In this document: positions 16,644 to 31,906 of the stretch, piece by piece | How the letters are laid out: every line of letters starts with the position of its first letter | Position numbering within the stretch: position 1 is the first letter of the stretch | Sequence record: PP496440.1 | Length of the DNA: 64,000 nt | Direction: 5' to 3' (one strand) | Translations under genes and position numbers: made by a program | Notes under the pieces: model-generated | Told to the model about the DNA's origin: nothing | What the model saw: the letters and a program-made list of their open reading frames with translations, nothing else | Database searches by the model: none

Positions 16644-16858
16644 GGTCTATTTCCAGTCATGGGCGTGACCCCAAGATAACGACCGAGTGCCGGGATGAAC
16701 AATGGGCAAGCGCTGACACAGACCCAAGCAACGGACATGGGAAGTGATACCTCGTTTAGCATCTGCCAACCACATGCGAACAGGATGATCAGGCTGAGTA
16801 TTGCGTAGTACGCGGACCAGATGATCAACCACCAAGCCTTACGGGACACGTTCTTCAT
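16640..16858 (-). CDS. Small two-TM membrane protein
   Basis: Start MKNVSRKAWW at 16858 overlaps the helicase stop; two hydrophobic stretches. Confidence 0.65.
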   Translation of the reverse strand: MKNVSRKAWWLIIWSAYYAILSLIILFACGWQMLNEVSLPMSVAWVCVSACPLFIPALGRYLGVTPMTGNRP

Positions 16859-18462
16859 TTGTTCCACTCCTTGCGAGCCTTCAATTGGGCCTCGGTAGGG
16901 GCCACCCGGAACCGTGTGTTCTGGGGTGACAAGTTCTTGAGCAGTGTGGTGGTCACGCATTCGTGCGGCGTGATATGCAGCAGCAGGTCACTGGCTCGGG
17001 TGTACGAAACGTATTGCACGTGGGGTAGCTGACCGTCTTCACAGTCGAACCAGTCATCGATCACCGCAACCCGTTCGCTCTCCATACCCTTCGCACCCCA
17101 TGAGGTGTTCAGCTCCACACCTTTGCCGTGGTCGTTGGCAATGATCTTGGTGATGAACGTCTTCACTTCGGCGGCGCTACCCAGGTCCCAGTTGGTGACG
17201 ATGTACAGCGCAGCGTCTGCGGCATCCTTGATCAGCGGCTCCTTGGCCTCCTTGCGCAAATCATCCAAGGCCTTAACGAAGTCAAGAGTGGACTTGCGGC
17301 CACAGCGCATGGCGACACCGATCACTTGTTCCAGCACCTTGGCTTTCTTGAAGGTAACCTCCAGCCCCCGATCCATGTACTCCAGTGCGATACGGATCAG
17401 ATGCTTGTTGCGAGCGCTGACCACACGTTGCACGTCGAACTTTATCATGCTCTTGATACGGTACGGATCCTTCTTGGTGTGCGCCGTCAGCATCTTGACT
17501 TGCCCACCTTCGGCGAATGCTTCAAGCGGCACATTGGGGAAGCGACCTTTGACGAACTCAACGATCTTAGACTTAGACCGGTACGTGGTGGTCGAAGGTA
17601 GTCGCTTGGCGTTGAACTCCTTGAACATGTCAGCCATGCCCGCACTCAACCCGCCTCGGAACGCATAGATGGCCTGCCATGGATCACCGACGAAGACGAA
17701 CAACATGCCCGGCTTCAATCGGCGGAATAGGCGAAGCGTGTCGTGCTGCACAAGGTTGAAGTCTTGGAACTCATCGACGAACAACACGTCCGGCAGGATC
17801 TTCGCCAGCTTGGCGTACTGCGTGCGTATAAAGCTGTTGGCCAGAACCATGCGGCTCATATCGTTGAAGTCTACCGACGACGTGGTCTCGTCACTGGCTT
17901 CCAACGCTTCACAGATTTCAGGAAGCAGCGGCACCACCTTCTCATGCGGAATCAGGAAGCGATACTTGCCGGTGATCAGTTCCCTGATCTGCTTCTCGTT
18001 GCTGTAGGGGATACCCAATTCACGGATGCGCTCTCCGTGCCAGCGGATGTCCTTGTTCTTCCGGGGTCCATCTTGGGGGAACAGCGCATCCACCACCTGG
18101 AACCACTTGTCGAACATGATCGGTACGGCCTTGGAACCCGTCAAGGTCTTGAACAACTCCAAACCATAGCTGTGCATGGTGGAACTGGAGACTGCCCGAT
18201 CCTTAATACGCTGATCGAACACCTTGGCGTTGTCCGTGTTGAACACGATGGCGCGCATGGTCAGCTTCGGGCACTCTTTACGAATGCGGCGGATAGTCTC
18301 GATGATCAGGGTGGTCTTACCCGATCCGGCACCGGCATCGATACCCACTGCGTCTTGTGGCTTGCCGGTGTACAAGTCTTTAGGCATCGACTTGGCTTTC
18401 TTCAAGATCTCGTTGAAGATGTCATTCTGTTGCTTGGACCAAACTCTTTCAGTAGTGGACAT
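16855..18462 (-). CDS. UvrD/Rep-like SF1 helicase
   Basis: AGAGSGKTT (Walker A), VDEFQD, VGDPWQAIYAFRG, TYRS, and GAKGME...YVSYTRA. Confidence 0.9.
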   Translation of the reverse strand: MSTTERVWSKQQNDIFNEILKKAKSMPKDLYTGKPQDAVGIDAGAGSGKTTLIIETIRRIRKECPKLTMRAIVFNTDNAKVFDQRIKDRAVSSSTMHSYGLELFKTLTGSKAVPIMFDKWFQVVDALFPQDGPRKNKDIRWHGERIRELGIPYSNEKQIRELITGKYRFLIPHEKVVPLLPEICEALEASDETTSSVDFNDMSRMVLANSFIRTQYAKLAKILPDVLFVDEFQDFNLVQHDTLRLFRRLKPGMLFVFVGDPWQAIYAFRGGLSAGMADMFKEFNAKRLPSTTTYRSKSKIVEFVKGRFPNVPLEAFAEGGQVKMLTAHTKKDPYRIKSMIKFDVQRVVSARNKHLIRIALEYMDRGLEVTFKKAKVLEQVIGVAMRCGRKSTLDFVKALDDLRKEAKEPLIKDAADAALYIVTNWDLGSAAEVKTFITKIIANDHGKGVELNTSWGAKGMESERVAVIDDWFDCEDGQLPHVQYVSYTRASDLLLHITPHECVTTTLLKNLSPQNTRFRVAPTEAQLKARKEWNK

Positions 18463-18527: not shown

Positions 18528-18589
18528 AGCGTATAGCAATCGAATGCGTGGAATTAGCCCTTAACGGCGTCCCCACTAGTGGAGAACAC

Positions 18590-20068
18590 ATGAAATCTGT
18601 AGCCGTTGACTACCAAAAGATAGCCAAGGAATGCCAGTGCACCGAGCTGCCTTCCAAGGTAAGAGTTACTCGTGCACGGGTCTATCCAAACTTGAGGACG
18701 TGCCTACTCTTCCTCAAGTACGATGCCAAAGGTGAACTGGTACAAGCCGAGATCACTGCGCCGTACGACACGTCCACTGAGCCAAAGGTGAGGGTGCTCA
18801 AACATCCTGACAAGAAGTCAGACTTCCTTTCATTATATAGGGCGCTGATCCGCCACCAGATCATACCCGAGTCTATTCCGAAGAAAGGTAACGGGATTGC
18901 ACCAACGCTGGAGGTCATCGGCACACTGGTTAGCCTGCTGCCGGAACGGGATGTCGAAACCTTCCGAACCCTTACCCCGGCCATCCAGACTGGCAGCGTT
19001 ATGTACGTCCCTCTGGTTACGTCCCGGCCAATGCCCATGGTGCAACACTGGATACCTGTTGACCAGCATTCAGAGCTGGGCATGATCGAGCTGGTCGATA
19101 CGGATAGCAAGCCTTTCCTGAATCAGTGGGTCAACAGGTTGAGCAACACCGCCACCGGTTATGTGATCTACACCCCGGAAGGCTCACACGGTCAGGAACT
19201 CGCCTGCTTCCGGGTGCCCAATGTACAAGGGGAGGAACTGTGTGTGGTCAAGAAGGTTGACTTCACCCTGACTGTTGCTCGCACACTCAAGCCGGTACTG
19301 ACTGTATCCACCAAGAGTACTCGGGCAGTGTCCCGCATTCCCCTACCCCACTATCTGATGCTGCGCAATCACCACATCAAGGTGGGCACGGTTATTTCCC
19401 TGCGTCGTAACGACCGAGGTGGGTTGGTGTACCATGAGACGGTGGCCGAGGAAGGCATGACGCCCCTGCCGCTGTGTCCACACTGCCACAGTGGTTCTGT
19501 GCTGCGAGGTAGTAGCAATGACGTGTACTGCAATAACGATTCATGCCGAGGCCTAGCCATCGTGCGACTTCGTTATGTCTTGAACAACAAGCTGGACGTC
19601 AAGTACCTGAGCGACAATAAGGTAACGGCGCTGATCAATGACAAGCAGGACCTGTTCAGCTTGCTTAAGACACCGACGCACCAGTTACGGCATAGACCTG
19701 GCTTTGGTGCACGTACCGTGGACGCACTGGAGGAGAAGCTTAACACTATTGCCGGTCTTCCACTGCACACACTGGCCGAGATGTCCTGCGCTTTCTACAA
19801 CGTGGGCGTGCCCCCACTGGATGAGATGGTGTTCAAGAAGATCTTTTCCGTTATGTCGATTGACTACCTGAAAGCGCTGCCGTCTACCGGCAAGATGTAC
19901 AGTCAGCTGCTCGACATCGAAGGTATCCGCAACAACCGCGCAGTGGCTTTCCTTGCTGGCTGGCCTGCATTTCAACAGTGGATGATAGACCTGAACGCTG
20001 CCCTACAGTCTCGCAGCGCAATCTCCACCACGGTAAATAGCCCAAAACAAATTCGAGGTGTTAAATGA
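18590..20068 (+). CDS. NAD+-dependent DNA ligase-like protein with degenerate catalytic motifs
   Basis: LigA architecture: NTase-like region, OB fold (IKVGTVISLRR), Zn finger CPHC...YCNNDSC, HhH (RPGFGART). The KxDG motif is replaced by NLRT, and there is no BRCT domain. Confidence 0.75.
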   Translation: MKSVAVDYQKIAKECQCTELPSKVRVTRARVYPNLRTCLLFLKYDAKGELVQAEITAPYDTSTEPKVRVLKHPDKKSDFLSLYRALIRHQIIPESIPKKGNGIAPTLEVIGTLVSLLPERDVETFRTLTPAIQTGSVMYVPLVTSRPMPMVQHWIPVDQHSELGMIELVDTDSKPFLNQWVNRLSNTATGYVIYTPEGSHGQELACFRVPNVQGEELCVVKKVDFTLTVARTLKPVLTVSTKSTRAVSRIPLPHYLMLRNHHIKVGTVISLRRNDRGGLVYHETVAEEGMTPLPLCPHCHSGSVLRGSSNDVYCNNDSCRGLAIVRLRYVLNNKLDVKYLSDNKVTALINDKQDLFSLLKTPTHQLRHRPGFGARTVDALEEKLNTIAGLPLHTLAEMSCAFYNVGVPPLDEMVFKKIFSVMSIDYLKALPSTGKMYSQLLDIEGIRNNRAVAFLAGWPAFQQWMIDLNAALQSRSAISTTVNSPKQIRGVK

Positions 20069-20829
20069 ACGTTCAAAACAGAACTCGTATCGCTGTGCTT
20101 GTCGGCGGCGGTCTGGACTCCCACGCCTACATGGTGTTGAAAGCCGACCAGCCACAGACGGACTTCATTCATGTGGACTACGGCCAGCGGGTTGCAGTAG
20201 CCGAGAGAAACGCCGTGTTGCAAATGGCTGAGAAGCTGGGCATTGCCCGCAGTCGCGTGTACACGCTGATCTGCAACAAGAAGAATCACATGCGCAAGGT
20301 CAATGACGGTGTGGGTGTGTTGTTTGGCACCGGCCCGGTCGAGATGGACAATGCGTTTGTTAAGGGGCGTAACCTGTTCCTGATTCAGAAGGCCATCGAG
20401 CTGGGCTACGGTCACGTGCACTTGACGCTGACCCAAGAGCGTGGCCGGATGTTCCCCGATGCCGATCTGGCATTCGTCCAGCTGGTTGACAACCTGATGC
20501 ACCGCAGTTATGACGTGAGGGTATCCGCCCCCTACATCATGGAAGACAAGCATCGGGTGATGTTCAAGGCGTATCGGCATTGCCCCGAGTTCCTCGATAT
20601 GTCTTTCACGTGCTGGGTAGGTCCTTATGTGGAATGTGGCACGTGCCCGCACTGCGTCAAGAAGGAAAAGATTCGAGCCGAGATGATCGTTGAGAAAGCC
20701 GACTACGATCTCAACAAGGATGAACGTGAGGCGCAGTGGAAGCAAGTCAAGGCAGGCTACGGCGACGCGTTGAAGCCCGCTGAGACCATCAACGCGACGG
20801 TATCTGTTGCTAAGGGGGAATTTAAATGA
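20065..20829 (+). CDS. queC: QueC-like PP-loop ATPase (paralogue 1)
   Basis: VLVGGGLDS, VDYGQR, FVKGRN, FPDAD and TCW...CGTCPHC Zn motif. Confidence 0.8.
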   Translation: MNVQNRTRIAVLVGGGLDSHAYMVLKADQPQTDFIHVDYGQRVAVAERNAVLQMAEKLGIARSRVYTLICNKKNHMRKVNDGVGVLFGTGPVEMDNAFVKGRNLFLIQKAIELGYGHVHLTLTQERGRMFPDADLAFVQLVDNLMHRSYDVRVSAPYIMEDKHRVMFKAYRHCPEFLDMSFTCWVGPYVECGTCPHCVKKEKIRAEMIVEKADYDLNKDEREAQWKQVKAGYGDALKPAETINATVSVAKGEFK

Positions 20830-21586: not shown

Positions 21587-22405
21587 ATGACCACTGCGCC
21601 CCCAAAGATTATCGTTGCATTCAGCGCCGGTACAGATTCAACTACAGCGGCCTACTACTATCGCAAGCTCGGCTATCAGGTAACGCTGGCCGTGTTCGAT
21701 GACGGCGCATGCAACGATCCACTTGGCCCTCTGTACGATCCGAACAAGCCGAAGGACTTGACCAACTTCTCGGATGAGTTCTACGATTACGTACGGATTC
21801 ACCAAGAGCACACGGAAGGCCATCTTCAGTTCGACTTCGTGGAGATTCGTTATCCGCAACTCGCATTGCTGGAAGCCAACAAGACAGCCAAGCCCGGTCG
21901 GGACAATGCAGCAGCAGCAGAGGCTGACGGCTTGGGCTTCTGGGTCGGCTTCAAGGGCCTGATGGCAATGTTGCTGATGAGCCACGGCGCCGCCAATGGT
22001 TACGAGGCAGTAGTCTTCGGCCACATGCCGTACAACAACCATTACGAAGATGAGCTGCCCCAGAACTTCGAGCTGCTGCGTCAGTACATGGTTACGGCCT
22101 ATGGCAGCCGAGTGGAAATTCCTCAGATCTACCACCCATTCTATCGACCGAATTTCGATACCAAGGAAAAGGTTATTGAGCTGGCGCAGGCAATCGGCGT
22201 GCCCTTGCGAGATACCTATTCGTGCCGCCGAGGTGAAGTAGAAACCCGAGGTATCCTCCTGCCACTTCTGCGTGGCGGTAACTCCAACTACGTGAGCCCC
22301 ACCTACCGTTGGAAGCATTGTGGTACGTGTGAGAACTGTGTCGAACGCAAGCGAGCCTTCGCGGCGCTGGGCATGAAAGATCCTGCCCCTTATATGGAAC
22401 ATTGA
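21587..22405 (+). CDS. queC: QueC-like PP-loop ATPase (paralogue 2)
   Basis: VAFSAGTDS, TKEKVIELA..IGVPLRDTYSC, HCGTCENCVERKRAF. Confidence 0.8.
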   Translation: MTTAPPKIIVAFSAGTDSTTAAYYYRKLGYQVTLAVFDDGACNDPLGPLYDPNKPKDLTNFSDEFYDYVRIHQEHTEGHLQFDFVEIRYPQLALLEANKTAKPGRDNAAAAEADGLGFWVGFKGLMAMLLMSHGAANGYEAVVFGHMPYNNHYEDELPQNFELLRQYMVTAYGSRVEIPQIYHPFYRPNFDTKEKVIELAQAIGVPLRDTYSCRRGEVETRGILLPLLRGGNSNYVSPTYRWKHCGTCENCVERKRAFAALGMKDPAPYMEH

Positions 22406-25568: not shown

Positions 25569-27653
25569 ATGAAATCCGTGAACCCCATCTTCAAGCACGT
25601 TCCCCAGTTCGACTGGCCTGTCATCCCGCGTGCACAGTGGGAAGAGATCATCAAAGGCAAAGAGCATGTGATGTTCGACTCCTTCTCGCAGCTCGCTCAG
25701 GTGCTGGCTATCCCGGTGAGCAGTTACCAGTTCTACTTCGAAGATGGGTCCACGTTGTTCGCCGGTCCCGAAGCAACCTTCACCGCCGCGCCGTACCCGC
25801 TGTATCAGGACCTTGAATTCGTCCTGACCCCTGACGAGACGTTGGTGCCGGGTCTTGCACTGGATACCAAACCGTGGGGCCTGTACACCGACGAATGGGT
25901 GGACAACTACGAAGGTGCGGACAAGGAAGACATCGGCAACAAGACCGGGTTCGAATTCATTCCGCTGTCGGACGCCTTGAAACTGGTGGTCCTCAACACG
26001 GAGACCATGCAGCTCCAGTACACTGCAATCGAGAGCTTCACGTACGACGGCGTGACTTACGTATACCTGCTGGCTGATGGCGTGTGCTGGGTACTGGCGG
26101 GCAAGTCAGGTGGTCTGGTTGCCAGCGAGCATGACAAAGGTGCGGCGTTCATCATGGTGTCCCATCCCGAGTTCGCCGGGTGCAGCGTAGACAACATGTA
26201 TCCAAGTGAGTTCGGTGAAGCGGAAGCGACGTTCTACGTTCAAGACGAGGAACACAACTACCTGGACGCGGCTAACCGCATCTTCGAAGAAGCCAAGGAC
26301 GTAGGCGCGGGCACATTCCTGACCATTGAGACCGGGGATGGACTGCCGACCGCGCTGGCGTACAACCTGCGGTACAGTGATGTGGCCCACGTTAACCTGC
26401 CGATGCACAACATCCACCAGTTCACTTCTCTGCACGTACGACTGGGTGAGACTCCTAACTTTTCCGAGGCCCCGGAAGCGTGCCGCATGAAAGAGGTTAT
26501 GGAGTATCTGGCGGACCCTGAGTCCCCGGTAGATCATTACTGGTCGGCCATCATGGTACTGGAGAAGAACTTCCCCGGTTTCGCCGACGCCCTGAAAGAC
26601 TCCAGTGTCCCGACCCGTGACATCGTGCACTCCAAACAGGCGTTCAGCTTGGAGATCGATCGCCAGTTCGGCAAGGAAGTGGCAAGCAAGATCGGGCTGA
26701 ACACTGGCGTATTCGCTCAAGTGAAAGACCGTGATGAATGGCTGGTACGCAAACACGAGTTCCCTACCGATAAGGTGGCCGTCAAGTACAACACCAAACA
26801 CTTCATCGGAATCTTCGATAAGGACGAGGTATCGAATTCCATCAACATGTGGCTGGCCGGTCAACCCGGAGAGTCGCTGATGATCGAAGAGTACTTCGGT
26901 GAGGGCAATCAGGAATTCAACCTGTGCTATGTGATCAACGAAGAGTTCGTGCAGCCGACGCTGTTCCTGTGCGAAGTCAACAAGATCCTAGGTAATGACA
27001 CCGGCGGCAAAGGTGGCAACACGCTGGCCTGCCATGATGCTCGTATTAACAAGTACCCTGAGTTCTTCGAGCCGGTCAATGCTGCGCTTGCTAACCTGCA
27101 TGAGCACGTGGAAGGTGTGAAGGGCTGGGTTGACCTGAGCTTCATGGTCCGCGACGGAATCCCTTACTTCACAGAGTGGTGCATTCGAATTGGCTGCTCC
27201 AACAACGCCACCATCGTGCGCCAGATGGAGACCCCGCTCGACGTTCTGCTGACCAACGTGGTTAACAAGGTGCATACCGAGCTGTCTTGGAAGCACTCCA
27301 TGTCTGTCAGCGTGGACATCTACAGCATGCCGCTGTCCGCAGGCAATGATGCCAACATGCAGTTCACCGAGTCGCTGACCACGCCGGTCGAGATGGTGTC
27401 CCCGCTCAATCTGGAACTGGCGGCGGAGAGTTTCTTCGACCCGATTGATTCGGCCTGGAACGCGGTGTACGACGGCTACATTGTCGAGGCGTACAACCGA
27501 TATGGCACCGTCTCGGGGTATTCCACCAACTGGAACTTCGCCTGCAATGCGGCGTACAATCACTTGAAAGATCAGTCGGTGTTGTACGGGGCATACCGCG
27601 AAGCGCCTGCCCACCACGACCCACTGACTCTGTTCCCTTTCCTCAAGGCGTAA
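25569..27653 (+). CDS. PurD/GARS-like ATP-grasp amide ligase with an N-terminal extension
   Basis: LEIDRQFGKEV, VAVKY, MIEEYF.E..EF, NDTGGKGGNT and DLSFMVRDGIPYFTEWCIRIG parallel the PurD ATP-grasp motifs. Confidence 0.75.
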   Translation: MKSVNPIFKHVPQFDWPVIPRAQWEEIIKGKEHVMFDSFSQLAQVLAIPVSSYQFYFEDGSTLFAGPEATFTAAPYPLYQDLEFVLTPDETLVPGLALDTKPWGLYTDEWVDNYEGADKEDIGNKTGFEFIPLSDALKLVVLNTETMQLQYTAIESFTYDGVTYVYLLADGVCWVLAGKSGGLVASEHDKGAAFIMVSHPEFAGCSVDNMYPSEFGEAEATFYVQDEEHNYLDAANRIFEEAKDVGAGTFLTIETGDGLPTALAYNLRYSDVAHVNLPMHNIHQFTSLHVRLGETPNFSEAPEACRMKEVMEYLADPESPVDHYWSAIMVLEKNFPGFADALKDSSVPTRDIVHSKQAFSLEIDRQFGKEVASKIGLNTGVFAQVKDRDEWLVRKHEFPTDKVAVKYNTKHFIGIFDKDEVSNSINMWLAGQPGESLMIEEYFGEGNQEFNLCYVINEEFVQPTLFLCEVNKILGNDTGGKGGNTLACHDARINKYPEFFEPVNAALANLHEHVEGVKGWVDLSFMVRDGIPYFTEWCIRIGCSNNATIVRQMETPLDVLLTNVVNKVHTELSWKHSMSVSVDIYSMPLSAGNDANMQFTESLTTPVEMVSPLNLELAAESFFDPIDSAWNAVYDGYIVEAYNRYGTVSGYSTNWNFACNAAYNHLKDQSVLYGAYREAPAHHDPLTLFPFLKA

Positions 27654-28822: not shown

Positions 28823-29770
28823 ATGGCAAAGCACAAGGTCAAAAGGTTGGAAATCAACCACATCTACGACTTCTACCCGTTGTATCAGGTGATGTACGGG
28901 CGTGGCATGGAGACCAAAGCGTTCGAGGTCTCCAAGTTCGCCAAGATGGTGCTGGACTTCGAAGCATCAACCAGTACTCGCCGGAAGTGGGACGTGCTGG
29001 AACCTTTCAGCGGTATCAGCGAGCATGAACACTTCTTCGCTGCTACTGGCCTGAACATCGAGCACTACACCGGCATGGACATCGTGGTTCCAGATGGGGC
29101 CAAAAACGTCATTCAAGGTGACATCATCACCGACACCCTTCCGTTTCACGTCAACGCGGTGTTCGCCTTCTACTACAGCTTGCAGAATGTACGGGACGCC
29201 AAGACTGGCATGCACACGCGGGAAAAGCTGGTGGAGTTCTTCGACAACATCCTCGGCCATCTGCAAGTCAATGCGAACAAGAGCCGTATGCCCGCAGTGT
29301 TCGCTTTCCACCTTGACCAGCCTGAAGACCCTAATTACTATCTGACGTCCCGTGCCGACGTTGGAGGTGAACAGTCATGGACCGCACCCGCGTGTGGTCT
29401 GCTGGGGCAGTGGGTCAAGTGCAAGCCTACTGATACTCTGGAAGTGAAGTGCAATCTGGACACCTGGTACAACCGTGTGCAGTGCACCGCGTACGATCAG
29501 GCGGAGGATATCCAGATTCTGGTAAATGGGCGAGTAGTGGCTACCGTTGAGATCGAACAGCCGTTCACCCATCGGGTCTGGACCGAGCATGAGGTGATCG
29601 ATATCCTGCGGGGTCTGGACTACAATCTGCACTTCCACATGTACAACGGCACCATCTCCAATTACGACTTCTTGATGACCCGTTTGGAAGACAAGCCCGT
29701 TCCCGGCGATGAAGAGGCTAATACTAATCAGATGACAACTGATATGCTGGTTGTCGTTAATCCGAGGTAA
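28823..29770 (+). CDS. Class I SAM-dependent methyltransferase-like protein (paralogue 1)
   Basis: VLEPFSG, YTGMDI, IQGDI and VNAVFAFYYSL. Confidence 0.65.
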   Translation: MAKHKVKRLEINHIYDFYPLYQVMYGRGMETKAFEVSKFAKMVLDFEASTSTRRKWDVLEPFSGISEHEHFFAATGLNIEHYTGMDIVVPDGAKNVIQGDIITDTLPFHVNAVFAFYYSLQNVRDAKTGMHTREKLVEFFDNILGHLQVNANKSRMPAVFAFHLDQPEDPNYYLTSRADVGGEQSWTAPACGLLGQWVKCKPTDTLEVKCNLDTWYNRVQCTAYDQAEDIQILVNGRVVATVEIEQPFTHRVWTEHEVIDILRGLDYNLHFHMYNGTISNYDFLMTRLEDKPVPGDEEANTNQMTTDMLVVVNPR

Positions 29771-29772
29771 GA

Positions 29773-30690
29773 ATGGCTAAGCCCAAGATCCCTACACGAA
29801 CCATCCCCACGTTGTACCAAGACTGGGGATTGTACAGCGCCATCTGCGAACTGCCGCAGGAGACGATGCTGATGATGTCGCGCTTCGTGGCAGACCGGAC
29901 TATAGAGCATGCTAATAGGCATGACATAGATCGTGTGTCGATCATGGAACCTTTCAGTGGTCCTATCCCGTATTACGAACCTGATATCGACAGTTTCCTT
30001 ACTAGAGCTGGCATAGGTTTAGACACGTATGATCATGTGGAATACCTAGATCACGGTGAGCTGACCAAAAAGAACAATATCATCATCGGGGACATCACCA
30101 CCATAGATCTTAAGCAAAAGTACGATGTCATCTACGGTAGTTACGGTAGCTTGGCCTGCCTGTTGCTGGATCAGACGCATAACAAAGCGTACGAGAAATC
30201 TCACGCGGCGTTGGTCAACATTCGCGAGCACCTGAAACCCGGCGGCATCTTCGTGCTAAACGCCAATGGGTCAAGCGAGAGTCTGCTGAATAACCTGTTG
30301 AACTCTGATGAGCCGGATCAAGAGATTCGCGTCCGTCCGGGATCGCAGTTAGGTAAGGCGTTCCGAATCAAACCAGACAGTAACGCGCTGCTTCGCTTCA
30401 CCTATCATGTGGAGTACGACCGGCGCACCACCTGCACCATGTGCCACTACAGCGATATGGTGCTGTCTGTAAATGGAGTTGACATCCAGCGCTGGGAGGT
30501 GGAATCCCCGACGTATCTTGCGCCGCTGGATGAACCCGAACTAATTCGAATGGCAGGTATGGCTGGTTTCAATCTGGACAACACTGAGTTCTACGGATTG
30601 GACACCACCGGTTATCCTGCCTTCTTCAAAATGGATACGGTCTGCGACGGGTCATGGTCACCCGCCGAGTTCGTAGTCTTTCGCACCTAA
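29773..30690 (+). CDS. Class I SAM-dependent methyltransferase-like protein (paralogue 2)
   Basis: IMEPFSG, IIGDITTIDLKQKYDVI and HLKPGGIFVL. Confidence 0.8.
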   Translation: MAKPKIPTRTIPTLYQDWGLYSAICELPQETMLMMSRFVADRTIEHANRHDIDRVSIMEPFSGPIPYYEPDIDSFLTRAGIGLDTYDHVEYLDHGELTKKNNIIIGDITTIDLKQKYDVIYGSYGSLACLLLDQTHNKAYEKSHAALVNIREHLKPGGIFVLNANGSSESLLNNLLNSDEPDQEIRVRPGSQLGKAFRIKPDSNALLRFTYHVEYDRRTTCTMCHYSDMVLSVNGVDIQRWEVESPTYLAPLDEPELIRMAGMAGFNLDNTEFYGLDTTGYPAFFKMDTVCDGSWSPAEFVVFRT

Positions 30691-30700
30691 CGAGGTTCCT

Positions 30701-31906
30701 ATGAGCGTTATCATCCCCACCGTAGCGATGGAGAGTGGTCAGCCAGACATGATCATTCCGGGTTGTGCGACACCTACCCCGGTCAAGTCTTCCAAGAAGC
30801 TGTACGAACGTGAAGACTTGATGGCGTACGACAGCGAGTCGGAGCATTGGCAGAAGCAGCTGGCCCGCCGCTACGCTCACCATGGTGAGATGGTCGGTGT
30901 GTTGAACAACGTCGAGGTGGTGCCGGAAGCCACCTATCAGAACTTCGACATGAAGATCACCCCGTACACCGCGCAGTTGATGGACCAGAACGACCCCAAC
31001 TGCCCGATCCGTCTGCAGTACATGCCGACCAACAAAGAGCTGGAGTCGATTCAGCGTGAAGAGACCATGCACAACGAGCTGGGCGAGGAAGAGGACACCA
31101 TCCCCGGTACCTCGGTCGTGCACCGCTACCCGCGTCGCGTCTTGTTCCTGACCACTACCCAATGCGCCAGCTTCTGCCGTTACTGCACCCGTGCACGCAT
31201 CGTCTCCCACGGCGGCGAAGCGGCGATCACCAAGAAGCACCTTGACGCCAGCATCGACTACATCGCTGGGAACAAGGACATCGAAGACGTGCTGCTGTCC
31301 GGCGGTGACCCGTTCATCCTGCCAGACAACAAGCTCGACGAGATTCTCGGTCGTATCCGCGCCGAGGCACCTCACGTTCGCTTCCTGCGTATCGGTAGCC
31401 GACTGCCGGTACAGATGCCGACCCGTATCACTCCAGAGCTGTGCGAGATTCTGGAACGCCACAACGTCAACATGGTCAACATCCATGTGAACCATCCGAA
31501 AGAAGTGACCCCTCTGCTGGCCTCCCGGATGAAGATGTTGCGCAAAGCGGGAGTCATGCTGGGCAATCAGGCGGTCCTGCTGAAAGGCGTGAACGACTCC
31601 ATCGAGGTGATGACCGAGCTGTGCTTGCGCATGGTCGAGATGGGTGTGCGTCCGTACTACGTCTACTCCAACGATCCGGTGGCCCAGGCCGCACACTTCA
31701 CCGTGTCGCTGAAAGAGATGCTGAATATCAACGAGGGTATGCGTGGCTTCCTGTCTGGCCCGGCTATGCCAACCTTCGTGGTAGACGGCGTGGGTGGCTT
31801 GGGCAAGATGCCGGTGCAGAAAGAGTACGTCGGCTTCGATAAGAACGGCGGTATCTTCGCCCAGAACTTCGAAGGGAAAACGGCCCGCATGCCCCATCTG
31901 GAATAA
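30701..31906 (+). CDS. kamA: Lysine 2,3-aminomutase family radical SAM/PLP enzyme (KamA/EpmB)
   Basis: HRYP.RVL, CASFCRYCTR (CxxxCxxC), LSGGDP, RIGSR.P..P.RIT, NQ.VLLKGVND, PYY, and GGLGK (PLP lysine). Confidence 0.95.
   Translation: MSVIIPTVAMESGQPDMIIPGCATPTPVKSSKKLYEREDLMAYDSESEHWQKQLARRYAHHGEMVGVLNNVEVVPEATYQNFDMKITPYTAQLMDQNDPNCPIRLQYMPTNKELESIQREETMHNELGEEEDTIPGTSVVHRYPRRVLFLTTTQCASFCRYCTRARIVSHGGEAAITKKHLDASIDYIAGNKDIEDVLLSGGDPFILPDNKLDEILGRIRAEAPHVRFLRIGSRLPVQMPTRITPELCEILERHNVNMVNIHVNHPKEVTPLLASRMKMLRKAGVMLGNQAVLLKGVNDSIEVMTELCLRMVEMGVRPYYVYSNDPVAQAAHFTVSLKEMLNINEGMRGFLSGPAMPTFVVDGVGGLGKMPVQKEYVGFDKNGGIFAQNFEGKTARMPHLE

Follow-up and report, generated by a model that had tools for sequence, protein, structure and literature searches.

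The reading frame at positions 18590-20068 of the DNA analysed here (the window, 64,000 nucleotides of record PP496440.1) raises the question of what a protein built like an NAD+-dependent DNA ligase may do directly ahead of QueC-like genes in a phage genome, once its active site has been lost. The sequence-only reading of this locus had regarded the product as a catalytically dead ligase and had proposed a role as clamp, nick sensor, scaffold or decoy.

Gene and product

The frame corresponds to KoPa5_00187 of Pseudomonas phage vB_PpuM-KoPa-5 (PP496440.1), a Pseudomonas jumbo phage; the 492 aa product, here termed pseudo-ligase, is deposited as "hypothetical protein" and is basic (pI 9.3). 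The gene extends from ATG 18590 to the stop codon TGA at 20066-20068 (Table 1). ATG 18590 is preferred over GTG 18548, since it aligns with the conserved Met of the LigA MxSL motif, with which the start of the protein coincides exactly. The overlap of the stop codon with the start of the first QueC-like gene (ATGA) was correctly described before, the ATG of the latter being located at 20065. As judged from the nucleotide sequence, translational coupling of the pseudo-ligase to the first QueC-like gene is supported.

Table 1 Features of the pseudo-ligase locus (window positions)
Feature	Position	Strand	Remarks
UvrD/Rep-like helicase	16855..18462	-	Pfam UvrD-helicase 1e-17; divergent; adjoins pseudo-ligase in all lineages
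Shine-Dalgarno GGAGAA	18581..18586	+	3 nt 5' of ATG; read from sequence
LigA-derived pseudo-ligase CDS	18590..20068	+	492 aa, KoPa5_00187
Degenerate LigA nucleotidyltransferase (adenylation) domain, residues 1-212	18590..19225	+	no domain Ia in front; hhalign
Motif I remnant N34-L35-R36-T37 for K-x-D-G	18689..18700	+	adenylatable Lys and Asp lost
Motif III remnant I110-G111-T112 for R-G-E	18917..18925	+	Gly retained, Glu lost; hhalign and family alignment
Motif IV remnant T189-G190-Y-V-I-Y194 for D-G-x-V-x-K	19154..19171	+	alignments
Motif V position, R208 for Lys	19211..19213	+	alignments
LigA-type OB-fold domain, residues 213-290	19226..19459	+	pLDDT ~90; structural alignment; Pfam matches in relatives
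Cys4 zinc finger, residues 296-319 (C296, C299, C314, C319)	19475..19546	+	Cys conservation
Helix-hairpin-helix (HhH) domain, residues 323-476	19556..20017	+	pLDDT ~90; Foldseek and VIA matches to LigA; no BRCT after
ATGA overlap, pseudo-ligase stop / QueC-like gene 1 start	20065..20068	+	
QueC-like PP-loop protein 1	20065..20829	+	Pfam QueC 7e-19; PP-loop degenerate (VGGGLDS); C-terminal Cys cluster
QueC-like PP-loop protein 2	21587..22405	+	Pfam QueC 3e-12; PP-loop SAGTDS

LigA ancestry and domain architecture

Among 1.84 billion representative proteins searched, only 20 matched the pseudo-ligase: (i) three belong to the pseudo-ligase family itself, and (ii) 17 are proteins of 560-780 aa that align to residues ~210-480. 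Pfam scanning of eight of these 17 yielded LigA adenylation, OB and BRCT domains in seven, and adenylation and OB domains only in P0004. Pfam and PHROGs scans of the pseudo-ligase protein gave no match, and, apart from a few LigAs, a word-indexed homologue search recovered nothing beyond the cluster of the phage itself.

Profile comparison by hhalign aligned the whole-length pseudo-ligase with a profile of 22 LigAs (E 7e-32, residues 1-473 to 72-552) and the N-terminal profile of the family with that of the LigA nucleotidyltransferase (NTase) domain (score 29.5, colinear from 1-174 to 69-271). In the controls for the latter score, 150 column shuffles reached 11.9 +/- 2.2 (maximum 19.0; none attained 29.5) and the reversed profile 12.5. 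Thus, the colinearity with LigA noted previously is genuine and above chance. ESM features of residues 1-212 retrieved PF01653 in 94 of the 100 nearest clusters, but with a low score (0.72), and an HMM of the N-terminal part searched against PDB sequences gave no match. AlphaFold models residues 1-213 with low confidence (pLDDT <50 over most of residues 1-212), so that profile comparison, not structure, is the basis for the N-terminal fold; by this measure a very diverged nucleotidyltransferase domain homologous to that of LigA is present.

In case of the C-terminal part, the alignment-based AlphaFold model shows OB fold, zinc finger and HhH at pLDDT ~90 (single-sequence prediction of the pseudo-ligase: pLDDT 34). 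Structural alignment with VIA, a kind of check proposed earlier, superposes residues 212-485 on residues 316-586 of E. coli LigA (Z 19.8, rmsd 3.1 A), and residues 213-476 can be confidently assigned, on the basis of the model, to the LigA OB, Cys4 zinc-finger and HhH module, parts which wrap LigA around duplex DNA. The four zinc-finger cysteines (C296/C299/C314/C319) are invariant or nearly so across the family and LigA, and the hairpin glycines of the HhH domain are, according to the alignment, kept only in part. All three modules are retained, as had been stated.

Two further losses were absent from the sequence-only reading. Domain Ia, the NMN-binding domain needed for the reaction of LigA with NAD+, is missing: residue 1 aligns to LigA template positions 69-72 (hhalign), and residue 12 of the model to residue 83 of the E. 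coli enzyme (VIA). The BRCT domain is missing as well, the protein ending 16 residues past the HhH domain where the aligned true LigAs run on into BRCT.

Loss of catalytic residues

The reference set for the motif comparison comprised 22 true LigAs, all of which possess KxDG and the other catalytic residues. The four substitutions reported before were all recovered: motif I KxDG is replaced by N34-L35-R36-T37 with loss of the adenylated Lys and the Asp (KxDG in 22/22 true LigAs), motif III RGE by I110-G111-T112 (Glu invariant in 22/22), motif IV DG by T189-G190 (Asp invariant in 22/22) and the motif V Lys by R208 (Lys invariant in 22/22). To these can be added motif Ia (TRGDG), the Arg of which, present in all 22, is Thr in the pseudo-ligase. 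In the relatives, motif I reads GLLG, GLSG and NFGG, the position of the motif III Glu is occupied by Val, Ile or Val, and the motif V Lys is retained in the Vibrio and Logan members. Across the pseudo-ligase family and LigA, G190 and V192 are nearly invariant, and K174 is the only invariant lysine in the N-terminal domain of the family. Considering that motif V is still basic and that motifs III and IV keep their glycines, binding of a ligand or phosphate of some kind may persist.

Thus, the protein represents a LigA derivative that has lost the adenylatable Lys together with four or more further residues, each of them invariant among the 22 true LigAs. Its designation as a catalytically dead derivative is well supported at the level of sequence, and the pseudo-ligase would accordingly be expected to be unable to ligate.

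Relatives, selection and phylogeny

Beyond the Pseudomonas phages, relatives were detected only in two Vibrio coralliilyticus jumbo phages and one assembled (Logan) contig, and a scan of IMG/VR with the family alignment yielded no relatives. The reading frame is intact in nine Pseudomonas phages, the two Vibrio phages and the contig. The motif I lysine is missing in all four lineages. These group as a single clade (SH-aLRT 97), the branches of which exceed those of the canonical LigAs two- to threefold in length. The split between KoPa-5 and Vibrio copies in this clade matches that between the canonical LigAs of the same phages, the Logan copy being without a canonical counterpart in the tree. 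A canonical LigA with KxDG is encoded elsewhere in the genomes of KoPa-5 (KoPa5_00143) and both Vibrio phages. Origin of the dead copy as a recent duplicate of the phage's own LigA was considered and rejected, with BLASTP between the two reaching only E 0.037 and the dead clade not being sister to the canonical LigAs of these phages (its deep placement is weak). Comparison with the Peetri orthologue yielded a dN/dS of 0.06 at a dS of 0.66, with 0.06 in both halves of the protein; as estimated from these sequences, the pseudo-ligase is under strong purifying selection.

The Vibrio homologues carry the database label "ligA: DNA ligase", those of the Pseudomonas phages the label "hypothetical protein"; Pfam DNA_ligase_OB is matched by the Vibrio and Logan homologues. 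The ligase label of the former is very probably wrong, which is of practical relevance for users of these annotations.

In the Vibrio and Logan lineages, an ORF of 147-161 aa overlaps the start of the pseudo-ligase gene. These ORFs are related to each other; none of them matched a family in Pfam or PHROGs, and a domain Ia motif is not obvious in their products. A split (two-subunit) ligase was rejected for KoPa-5, which has no homologue of the small upstream ORF; KoPa5_00045 (160 aa, annotated "DNA ligase") matches just a PHROG of 67 positions and is unrelated to the 147-161 aa ORFs.

Genomic neighbourhood

The order helicase, pseudo-ligase, QueC-like genes is common to all lineages. In the Vibrio phages one inserted gene separates the pseudo-ligase from the QueC-like gene; in KoPa-5 and the Logan contig the two are direct neighbours. 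Of the downstream products, two are divergent PP-loop proteins of QueC-like type and one is a radical SAM enzyme similar to lysine-2,3-aminomutase; several others are unknowns. A DpdA/TGT-type transglycosylase was not found among the genes scanned; in the course of this search, a DUF5591 protein of the Vibrio phages proved to be without counterpart in KoPa-5, and a 408-aa candidate resembled a sliding clamp instead. KoPa-5 appears to have its own beta-clamp, and a conventional sliding clamp with clamp loader is probably present in the phage.

The pseudo-ligase gene is located in a replication module, with genes for RNase H, helicase, topoisomerase II, polynucleotide kinase and DNA polymerase nearby. 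Since the whole helicase-to-topoisomerase block is syntenic and conservation of this arrangement is confined to a single phage clade, gene order does not separate functional linkage from shared ancestry, and the linkage between the pseudo-ligase and the QueC-like genes could be merely historical. Likewise, co-occurrence with the cluster proteins carries no information, since these are confined to the same clade as the pseudo-ligase.

Proposed function

We consider it slightly more probable than not that the KoPa5_00187 product, a LigA-derived pseudoenzyme, serves as a non-catalytic DNA-binding or targeting subunit for the products of the QueC-like cluster and/or the helicase. An ancestral phage NAD+-dependent DNA ligase would have lost domain Ia, BRCT and the residues for adenylation and nick sealing, i.e., motif I Lys and Asp, motif Ia Arg, motif III Glu and motif IV Asp, and would have kept the shell of the NTase domain together with an intact OB/zinc-finger/HhH module. 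The resulting protein may bind duplex or nicked DNA of the phage without any catalysis and may in this way serve its partner proteins as a DNA-binding or targeting subunit; the likeliest partners are the translationally coupled QueC-like cluster products and/or the neighbouring helicase. Such an arrangement would resemble that of poxvirus A20, an inactivated NAD-ligase bridging the replisome. The beta-clamp that the phage appears to own speaks against it in so far as an A20-like processivity factor would be less needed. Nick recognition by ligases probably requires the Lys-AMP adduct; if so, a protein lacking this lysine may be unable to sense nicks.

Considerably less probable, but to be taken seriously, is an accessory function in replication or repair that is non-catalytic and unrelated to the QueC-like genes, with the UvrD-like helicase as partner or as an A20-like bridge in the replisome, the position of the QueC-like genes being accidental. 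Location within the replication module and the A20 precedent would fit such a function, as would the constancy of pseudo-ligase and adjoining helicase in all lineages while the content of the downstream cluster varies. However, the stop/start overlap with QueC-like gene 1 suggests co-translation, QueC-like genes follow the pseudo-ligase in every lineage, and the probable presence of a conventional sliding clamp and clamp loader also speaks against it.

Returning to a targeting subunit, one may speculate, with little confidence, that several enzymes form a machine for DNA hypermodification in which the dead ligase is the subunit that recognises DNA. Seated on phage DNA that is nicked or has just been replicated, the LigA clamp would bring in the enzymes encoded downstream (QueC-like, ATP-grasp-like and radical-SAM), thereby coupling base modification to replication.

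It is improbable that the protein is still an enzyme, i.e., a ligase or nucleotidyltransferase with a non-canonical nucleophile (K174, K43), with a partner in trans or with a late step only (sealing of pre-adenylated nicks, AMP removal). The unique invariance of K174 in the N-terminal domain of the family, the persisting basic motif V residue and motif III/IV glycines, and a constraint on the N-terminal half equal to that on the C-terminal half (dN/dS 0.06) would be compatible with residual activity, and the small overlapping upstream ORF of the Vibrio and Logan lineages could encode a partner. However, five residues invariant in 22/22 LigAs are replaced by chemically unrelated ones that differ between lineages, pointing to relaxed catalytic constraint rather than to a new active site. 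Moreover, domain Ia is absent, KoPa-5 has no counterpart of the small ORF, and a canonical LigA is at hand in KoPa-5 and both Vibrio phages.

A function as decoy, which the sequence-only reading had listed among its proposals, is hardly to be expected. The protein would cover nicks or ends against host nucleases or ligase, or would mimic LigA and thereby titrate a host factor or defence sensor. The retained DNA-binding modules would suit this role, and G3 jumbo phages are strongly restricted by prophage-encoded functions of the host (10.1101/2024.03.26.586772), so that the genome can be expected to include counter-defence genes. Nothing specific favours this particular gene, however: the locus is a conserved block of replication and metabolism genes rather than a variable accessory region, and vertical inheritance across Pseudomonas and Vibrio hosts is unusual for host-specific counter-defence genes. 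A functionless, decaying remnant of a duplicated ligase gene, as loss of all catalytic motifs and the two- to threefold longer branches might imply, can practically be dismissed in view of a frame that is intact throughout (nine Pseudomonas and two Vibrio phages, one contig), the invariant zinc-finger cysteines and the contradicting selection analysis (dN/dS 0.06 at dS 0.66).

Conversion of enzymes to non-catalytic proteins is well documented in poxviruses, including one case derived from an NAD-dependent ligase. For bacteriophages, no description of an inactivated NAD-ligase was found in the literature searched; paper searches on these Pseudomonas and Vibrio phages, on heterodimeric ligases and on ligase combined with 7-deazaguanine yielded nothing on the pseudo-ligase, and the paper on the CEPEST phage collection makes no mention of it. 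The present case is unusually clean, with active and inactivated LigA in the same genomes, clade-wide inactivation in Pseudomonas and Vibrio phages, strong selection, and a laboratory host (P. putida) at hand. If the pseudo-ligase indeed tethers the QueC-like and radical-SAM enzymes, it would show how a phage routes hypermodification to its own genome; a role as hypermodification subunit would then constitute an undescribed way of targeting modification enzymes to DNA.

Comparison with known systems

LigA of E. coli (PDB 2owo, 4glx) and the pseudo-ligase share common ancestry and the module order NTase, OB, Cys4 zinc finger and HhH, and the C-terminal 270 residues of the latter superpose on the E. 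coli enzyme. In contrast to LigA, the pseudo-ligase lacks domain Ia, BRCT and the catalytic residues of motifs I, Ia, III and IV, and carries Arg in motif V.

E. coli LigB, the minimal NAD+ ligase of Enterobacteriaceae, still has the lysine of KxDG, ligates weakly and is missing two of the four zinc cysteines. Like the pseudo-ligase, LigB accompanies a main ligase as a second paralogue of the LigA family and is devoid of BRCT, but the situation is reversed in the phage protein, which has four cysteines and no catalytic lysine.

The heterodimeric DNA ligase of phage PR1 (PDB 9hu3, 9i5i) is likewise a phage relative of LigA with unusual architecture; its chain A matches residues 14-287 (NTase and OB) of the pseudo-ligase model (Z 8.9), and the small upstream ORF of the Vibrio and Logan lineages first hinted at a comparable two-subunit arrangement. 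Judging from the titles of the PDB entries, the PR1 protein is a ligase in complex with nicked DNA, whereas the KoPa-5 protein is a single polypeptide.

Poxvirus A20 (OPG148), the closest precedent, is an inactivated bacterial-type NAD-dependent DNA ligase with disrupted catalytic site, exapted as DNA polymerase processivity factor and diverged past sequence recognition (10.1101/2022.11.22.517515). The two proteins have in common a LigA-derived fold with disrupted catalytic site, a non-enzymatic role on DNA (proposed here for the phage protein) and their occurrence in large dsDNA viruses. However, A20 bridges polymerase and uracil-DNA glycosylase, partners of a kind not known for the pseudo-ligase, and in the phage protein zinc finger and HhH domain are still recognisable. 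The pseudo-ligase model weakly matches MPXV A22, the A20 of that virus, in 8k8u (chain C), with a Foldseek E of 9e-4 and a VIA Z of 7.7 over 143 residues at 5% identity. Since this match is far weaker than those to LigA itself, pseudo-ligase and A20 were most likely inactivated independently, in unrelated virus lineages.

LigA ancestry of KoPa5_00187

The ORF is carried at 100 % identity (tblastn) by Pseudomonas phage vB_PpuM-KoPa-5 (PP496440.1, 201,088 bp), a P. putida jumbo myovirus of the CEPEST collection in Estonia (10.1101/2024.03.26.586772), and its product (KoPa5_00187, 492 aa) is deposited as "hypothetical protein". The window represents 137,089-201,088 of this record and stops exactly at the right-hand terminus of the linear genome as deposited (position 201,088). 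For these G3 jumbo phages, DNA that is difficult to purify with a standard kit and a >1000-fold restriction by host prophages were reported (10.1101/2024.03.26.586772).

KoPa5_00187 is basic (predicted pI 9.3) and has no match in Pfam or PHROGs. An exhaustive phmmer search among 1.84 billion representative proteins yielded 20 matches: (i) three forming its own family, i.e., the cluster of the phage itself, a Vibrio phage protein of 437 aa and one of 440 aa encoded on an assembled contig, and (ii) 17 proteins of 560-780 aa aligning to residues ~210-480. Seven of the eight long matches scanned contain the LigA adenylation, OB and BRCT domains of Pfam (most also HhH), the eighth (P0004) only adenylation and OB. 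Colinearity with LigA, as proposed in the sequence-only reading, was recovered by aligning the family profile with that of 22 true LigAs (residues 1-473 onto 72-552, E 7e-32).

Residues 214-476 were modelled by AlphaFold (25-sequence alignment) at pLDDT ~90, and the top PDB matches of the model are all LigA (Foldseek; 4glx, 2owo, 8ak4 and 1dgs, E 1e-15 to 1e-13). Residues 212-485 superimpose on E. coli LigA 316-586 (VIA-align; 255 residues, 3.1 A, Z 19.8). Top-ranked in a viral structure library is a 440-aa protein, presumably a homologue from the Vibrio phages, with ~25 viral NAD+ ligases next. Structural alignment and the four zinc cysteines conserved with LigA (C296, C299, C314, C319) agree with the earlier view that OB fold, zinc finger and HhH remain, and all three modules can be classed as LigA-type. 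A BRCT domain is absent, with 16 residues between the end of HhH and the chain end in the alignment of the family with the 22 LigAs.

The N-terminal third, on which the reading hinges, gives a far weaker sequence signal. It was modelled at pLDDT < 50, and its HMM found no match among PDB sequences. Its family profile is nevertheless colinear with that of the LigA nucleotidyltransferase domain (1-174 onto 69-271), scoring 29.5 versus 11.9 +/- 2.2 (maximum 19.0) for 150 column-shuffled controls and 12.5 for the reversed alignment. Judged from these profiles, homology to this domain can be regarded as established, and the corresponding fold is probable. Language-model features of residues 1-215 fall mostly into adenylation-domain clusters, a score serving only as a lead. 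Since the first residue coincides exactly with the conserved MxSL motif of LigA, domain Ia is entirely missing.

Loss of catalytic motifs

Invariant in the 22 true LigAs, which include very divergent phage LigAs and that of KoPa-5 itself, are Lys, Asp and Gly of motif I, Arg of TRGDG, Glu of motif III, Asp and Gly of motif IV and Lys of motif V. In KoPa5_00187, K-x-D-G of motif I is replaced by N34-L35-R36-T37, R-G-E of motif III by I110-G111-T112, D-G of motif IV by T189-G190 and Lys of motif V by R208, as the sequence-only reading had it for all four; losses beyond its list are the motif Ia Arg (here Thr), domain Ia and the BRCT domain. In the relatives, motif I is GLLG, GLSG and NFGG, the motif III Glu is replaced by Val, Ile and Val, and the motif IV Asp by Lys, Lys and Glu; the motif V Lys is retained. 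These lineage-to-lineage differences point to loss of catalytic constraint rather than a new active site. By known chemistry, KoPa5_00187 would be incapable of the ligase reaction. A caveat is K174, the sole lysine invariant across the family's N-terminal domain, the part modelled at pLDDT < 50.

Second ligase and descent

KoPa-5 also encodes a canonical LigA (KoPa5_00143). The Vibrio coralliilyticus phages GR7B and GR11A likewise each possess a canonical LigA (KEDG; 37-38 % identity to KoPa5_00143) at a locus apart from the dead copy. Maximum-likelihood analysis of the OB-Zn-HhH region groups the five dead copies, with much longer branches, in one clade (SH-aLRT 97) and the three canonical copies in another (99); the tree contains no canonical LigA of the Logan contig. 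KoPa-5 and the Vibrio phages are split identically in both clades. Inactivation was therefore a single event predating the divergence of these phage lineages, with co-inheritance of both genes since. Support for the deep position of the dead clade is weak, so that no LigA is claimed as its parent.

Neither of the Vibrio homologues, GR11A_00055 and GR7B_00120, has domain Ia or the lysine of motif I; as each genome encodes a canonical LigA at another locus, their deposited name is probably wrong. In KoPa-5, KoPa5_00045, which adjoins DHFR, owes its name to a PHROG of 67 positions that it matches (phrog_13916); Pfam detects no ligase domain in it, and it resembles neither LigA nor the small Vibrio-phage ORFs.

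Features of the dead-ligase locus and related genes (window positions unless stated; L002, GR11A locus; L003, Logan contig; L004, KoPa-5 record; L008, GR7B locus)
Feature	Position	Strand	Remarks
KoPa5_00187	ATG 18590 to TGA 20066-20068	+	GGAGAA at 18581-18586
QueC-like 1	20065-20829	+	Pfam E 7e-19; degenerate PP-loop, VGGGLDS instead of SGGxDS
Unknown, 240 aa	between QueC-like 1 and 2
QueC-like 2	21587-22405	+	Pfam E 3e-12
694-aa protein	25569-27653	+	faint ATP-grasp signal (GARS_A, E 0.09); annotated hypothetical
Two ~310-aa paralogues	28823-30690	+	23 % mutual identity, E 1e-7; annotated hypothetical
KoPa5_00198	30701-31906	+	lysine-2,3-aminomutase-like radical SAM; Radical_SAM 3e-11, LAM_C 1e-7
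KoPa5_00233, 408 aa	57105-58331	+	"hypothetical protein"; between QueE-like gene and GTP cyclohydrolase I
KoPa5_00143, 659 aa	record 121,096-123,075 (outside window)		KLDG; Pfam adenylation and OB
KoPa5_00045, 160 aa	L004:39285-39767 (outside window)		annotated "DNA ligase"
GR11A_00055	L002:5812-7125		deposited "ligA: DNA ligase"
GR7B_00120	L008:8917-10239		deposited "ligA: DNA ligase"
GR11A_00054, 320 aa	L002:7158-8120		DUF5591
147-161 aa ORFs	L002:5382-5825; L008:8478-8933; L003:2813-3298		overlap dead-ligase start

Gene neighbourhood

In all lineages, the dead-ligase gene adjoins a divergently transcribed UvrD/Rep-like helicase gene; downstream of the dead-ligase gene, in its own orientation, lie two QueC-like PP-loop genes and a tightly packed run that ends at topoisomerase II. 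The ATGA overlap of the dead-ligase stop with the first QueC-like gene, noted earlier from sequence, is real. Both KoPa-5 QueC-like proteins are far from canonical (Pfam QueC E 5e-59 for one Vibrio phage copy), keep the C-terminal CxxCxxC cluster and may not be makers of preQ0. Beyond QueC-like 2 lie several unknowns; the 694-aa protein has 38 % identity to a protein of a Vibrio phage, and the second ~310-aa paralogue (29773-30690) gives faint methyltransferase signals. KoPa5_00198, at the end of the run, shares 52 % identity with a GR7B gene product annotated as lysine 2,3-aminomutase; the presence of an aminomutase beside genes of QueC type is a hint of a modification derived from an amino acid.

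Elsewhere, the window encodes GTP cyclohydrolase I and, according to annotation, a QueE-like protein (weak Fe-S match only), so that the first steps of 7-deazapurine synthesis are plausibly encoded. A DpdA/TGT-type enzyme was searched for among the KoPa-5 genes scanned and not found, and "modification operon" is therefore a reasonable guess for the genes behind the dead ligase, not a finding. The cluster proteins are confined to the same phage clade as the dead ligase, and co-occurrence is therefore uninformative on functional linkage. KoPa5_00233 has no match in Pfam or PDB sequences; as its language-model features match phage beta sliding-clamp clusters (0.95, 193 shared features), it probably represents the sliding clamp of KoPa-5 rather than a DpdA.

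The Vibrio phages encode a DUF5591 protein (GR11A_00054) directly behind the dead ligase and ahead of the QueC genes; KoPa-5 and the Logan contig have no counterpart. DUF5591 occurs in archaeosine tRNA-guanine transglycosylase and in archaeosine synthase. The Vibrio phages and the contig also have small ORFs at the dead-ligase start, with DHFR just 5' on the opposite strand. The three are mutually related (GR7B to the contig only via GR11A), belong to no Pfam or PHROG family and lack a homologue in KoPa-5; their products may be a lineage-specific partner.

Proposed role

KoPa5_00187 derives from LigA, retains the modules that encircle DNA, is under selection and occurs alongside a real LigA. 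We suggest that it binds DNA without catalysis and would act as DNA-binding or targeting subunit for partner proteins, candidates being proteins encoded by the coupled QueC-like cluster or the adjacent helicase. This general model, with cluster and/or helicase as partners, is modestly favoured. A purely replication or repair role, unconnected with the QueC-like genes, appears rather unlikely. Residual or altered enzymatic activity is improbable. Action as a decoy or counter-defence protein, already contemplated in the sequence-only reading, is given equally little credence, if not less. That the protein is functionless can practically be dismissed: relative to the 92 %-identical orthologue of phage Peetri, dN/dS is 0.06 (dS 0.66, dN 0.041), equally so in the N- and C-terminal halves, and nine Pseudomonas phages, two Vibrio phages and one contig all carry an unbroken frame; it is no decaying remnant.

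Comparison with known systems

A search of the accessible literature yielded no description of a phage protein of the inactivated NAD-ligase type. Lacking domain Ia, KxDG, the motif III Glu, the motif IV Asp and BRCT, KoPa5_00187 cannot be classed as a functional LigA. LigB retains the catalytic lysine; KoPa5_00187 has lost it and is thus not LigB-like. Identity with the split phage ligase (PDB 9hu3, 9i5i) was rejected, since KoPa-5 encodes a single polypeptide without the small partner ORF. Poxvirus A20/OPG148 provides the best precedent, being described as a bacterial-type NAD-ligase that has been inactivated and bridges components of the viral replisome as one of its subunits (10.1101/2022.11.22.517515). 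The model of KoPa5_00187 weakly matches the A20 orthologue A22 of monkeypox (8k8u chain C), most likely through shared LigA descent and not direct kinship. Both are inactivated NAD-ligases exapted by a large DNA virus; KoPa5_00187 most likely arose independently, retains far more of the parent ligase and is readily testable in P. putida.
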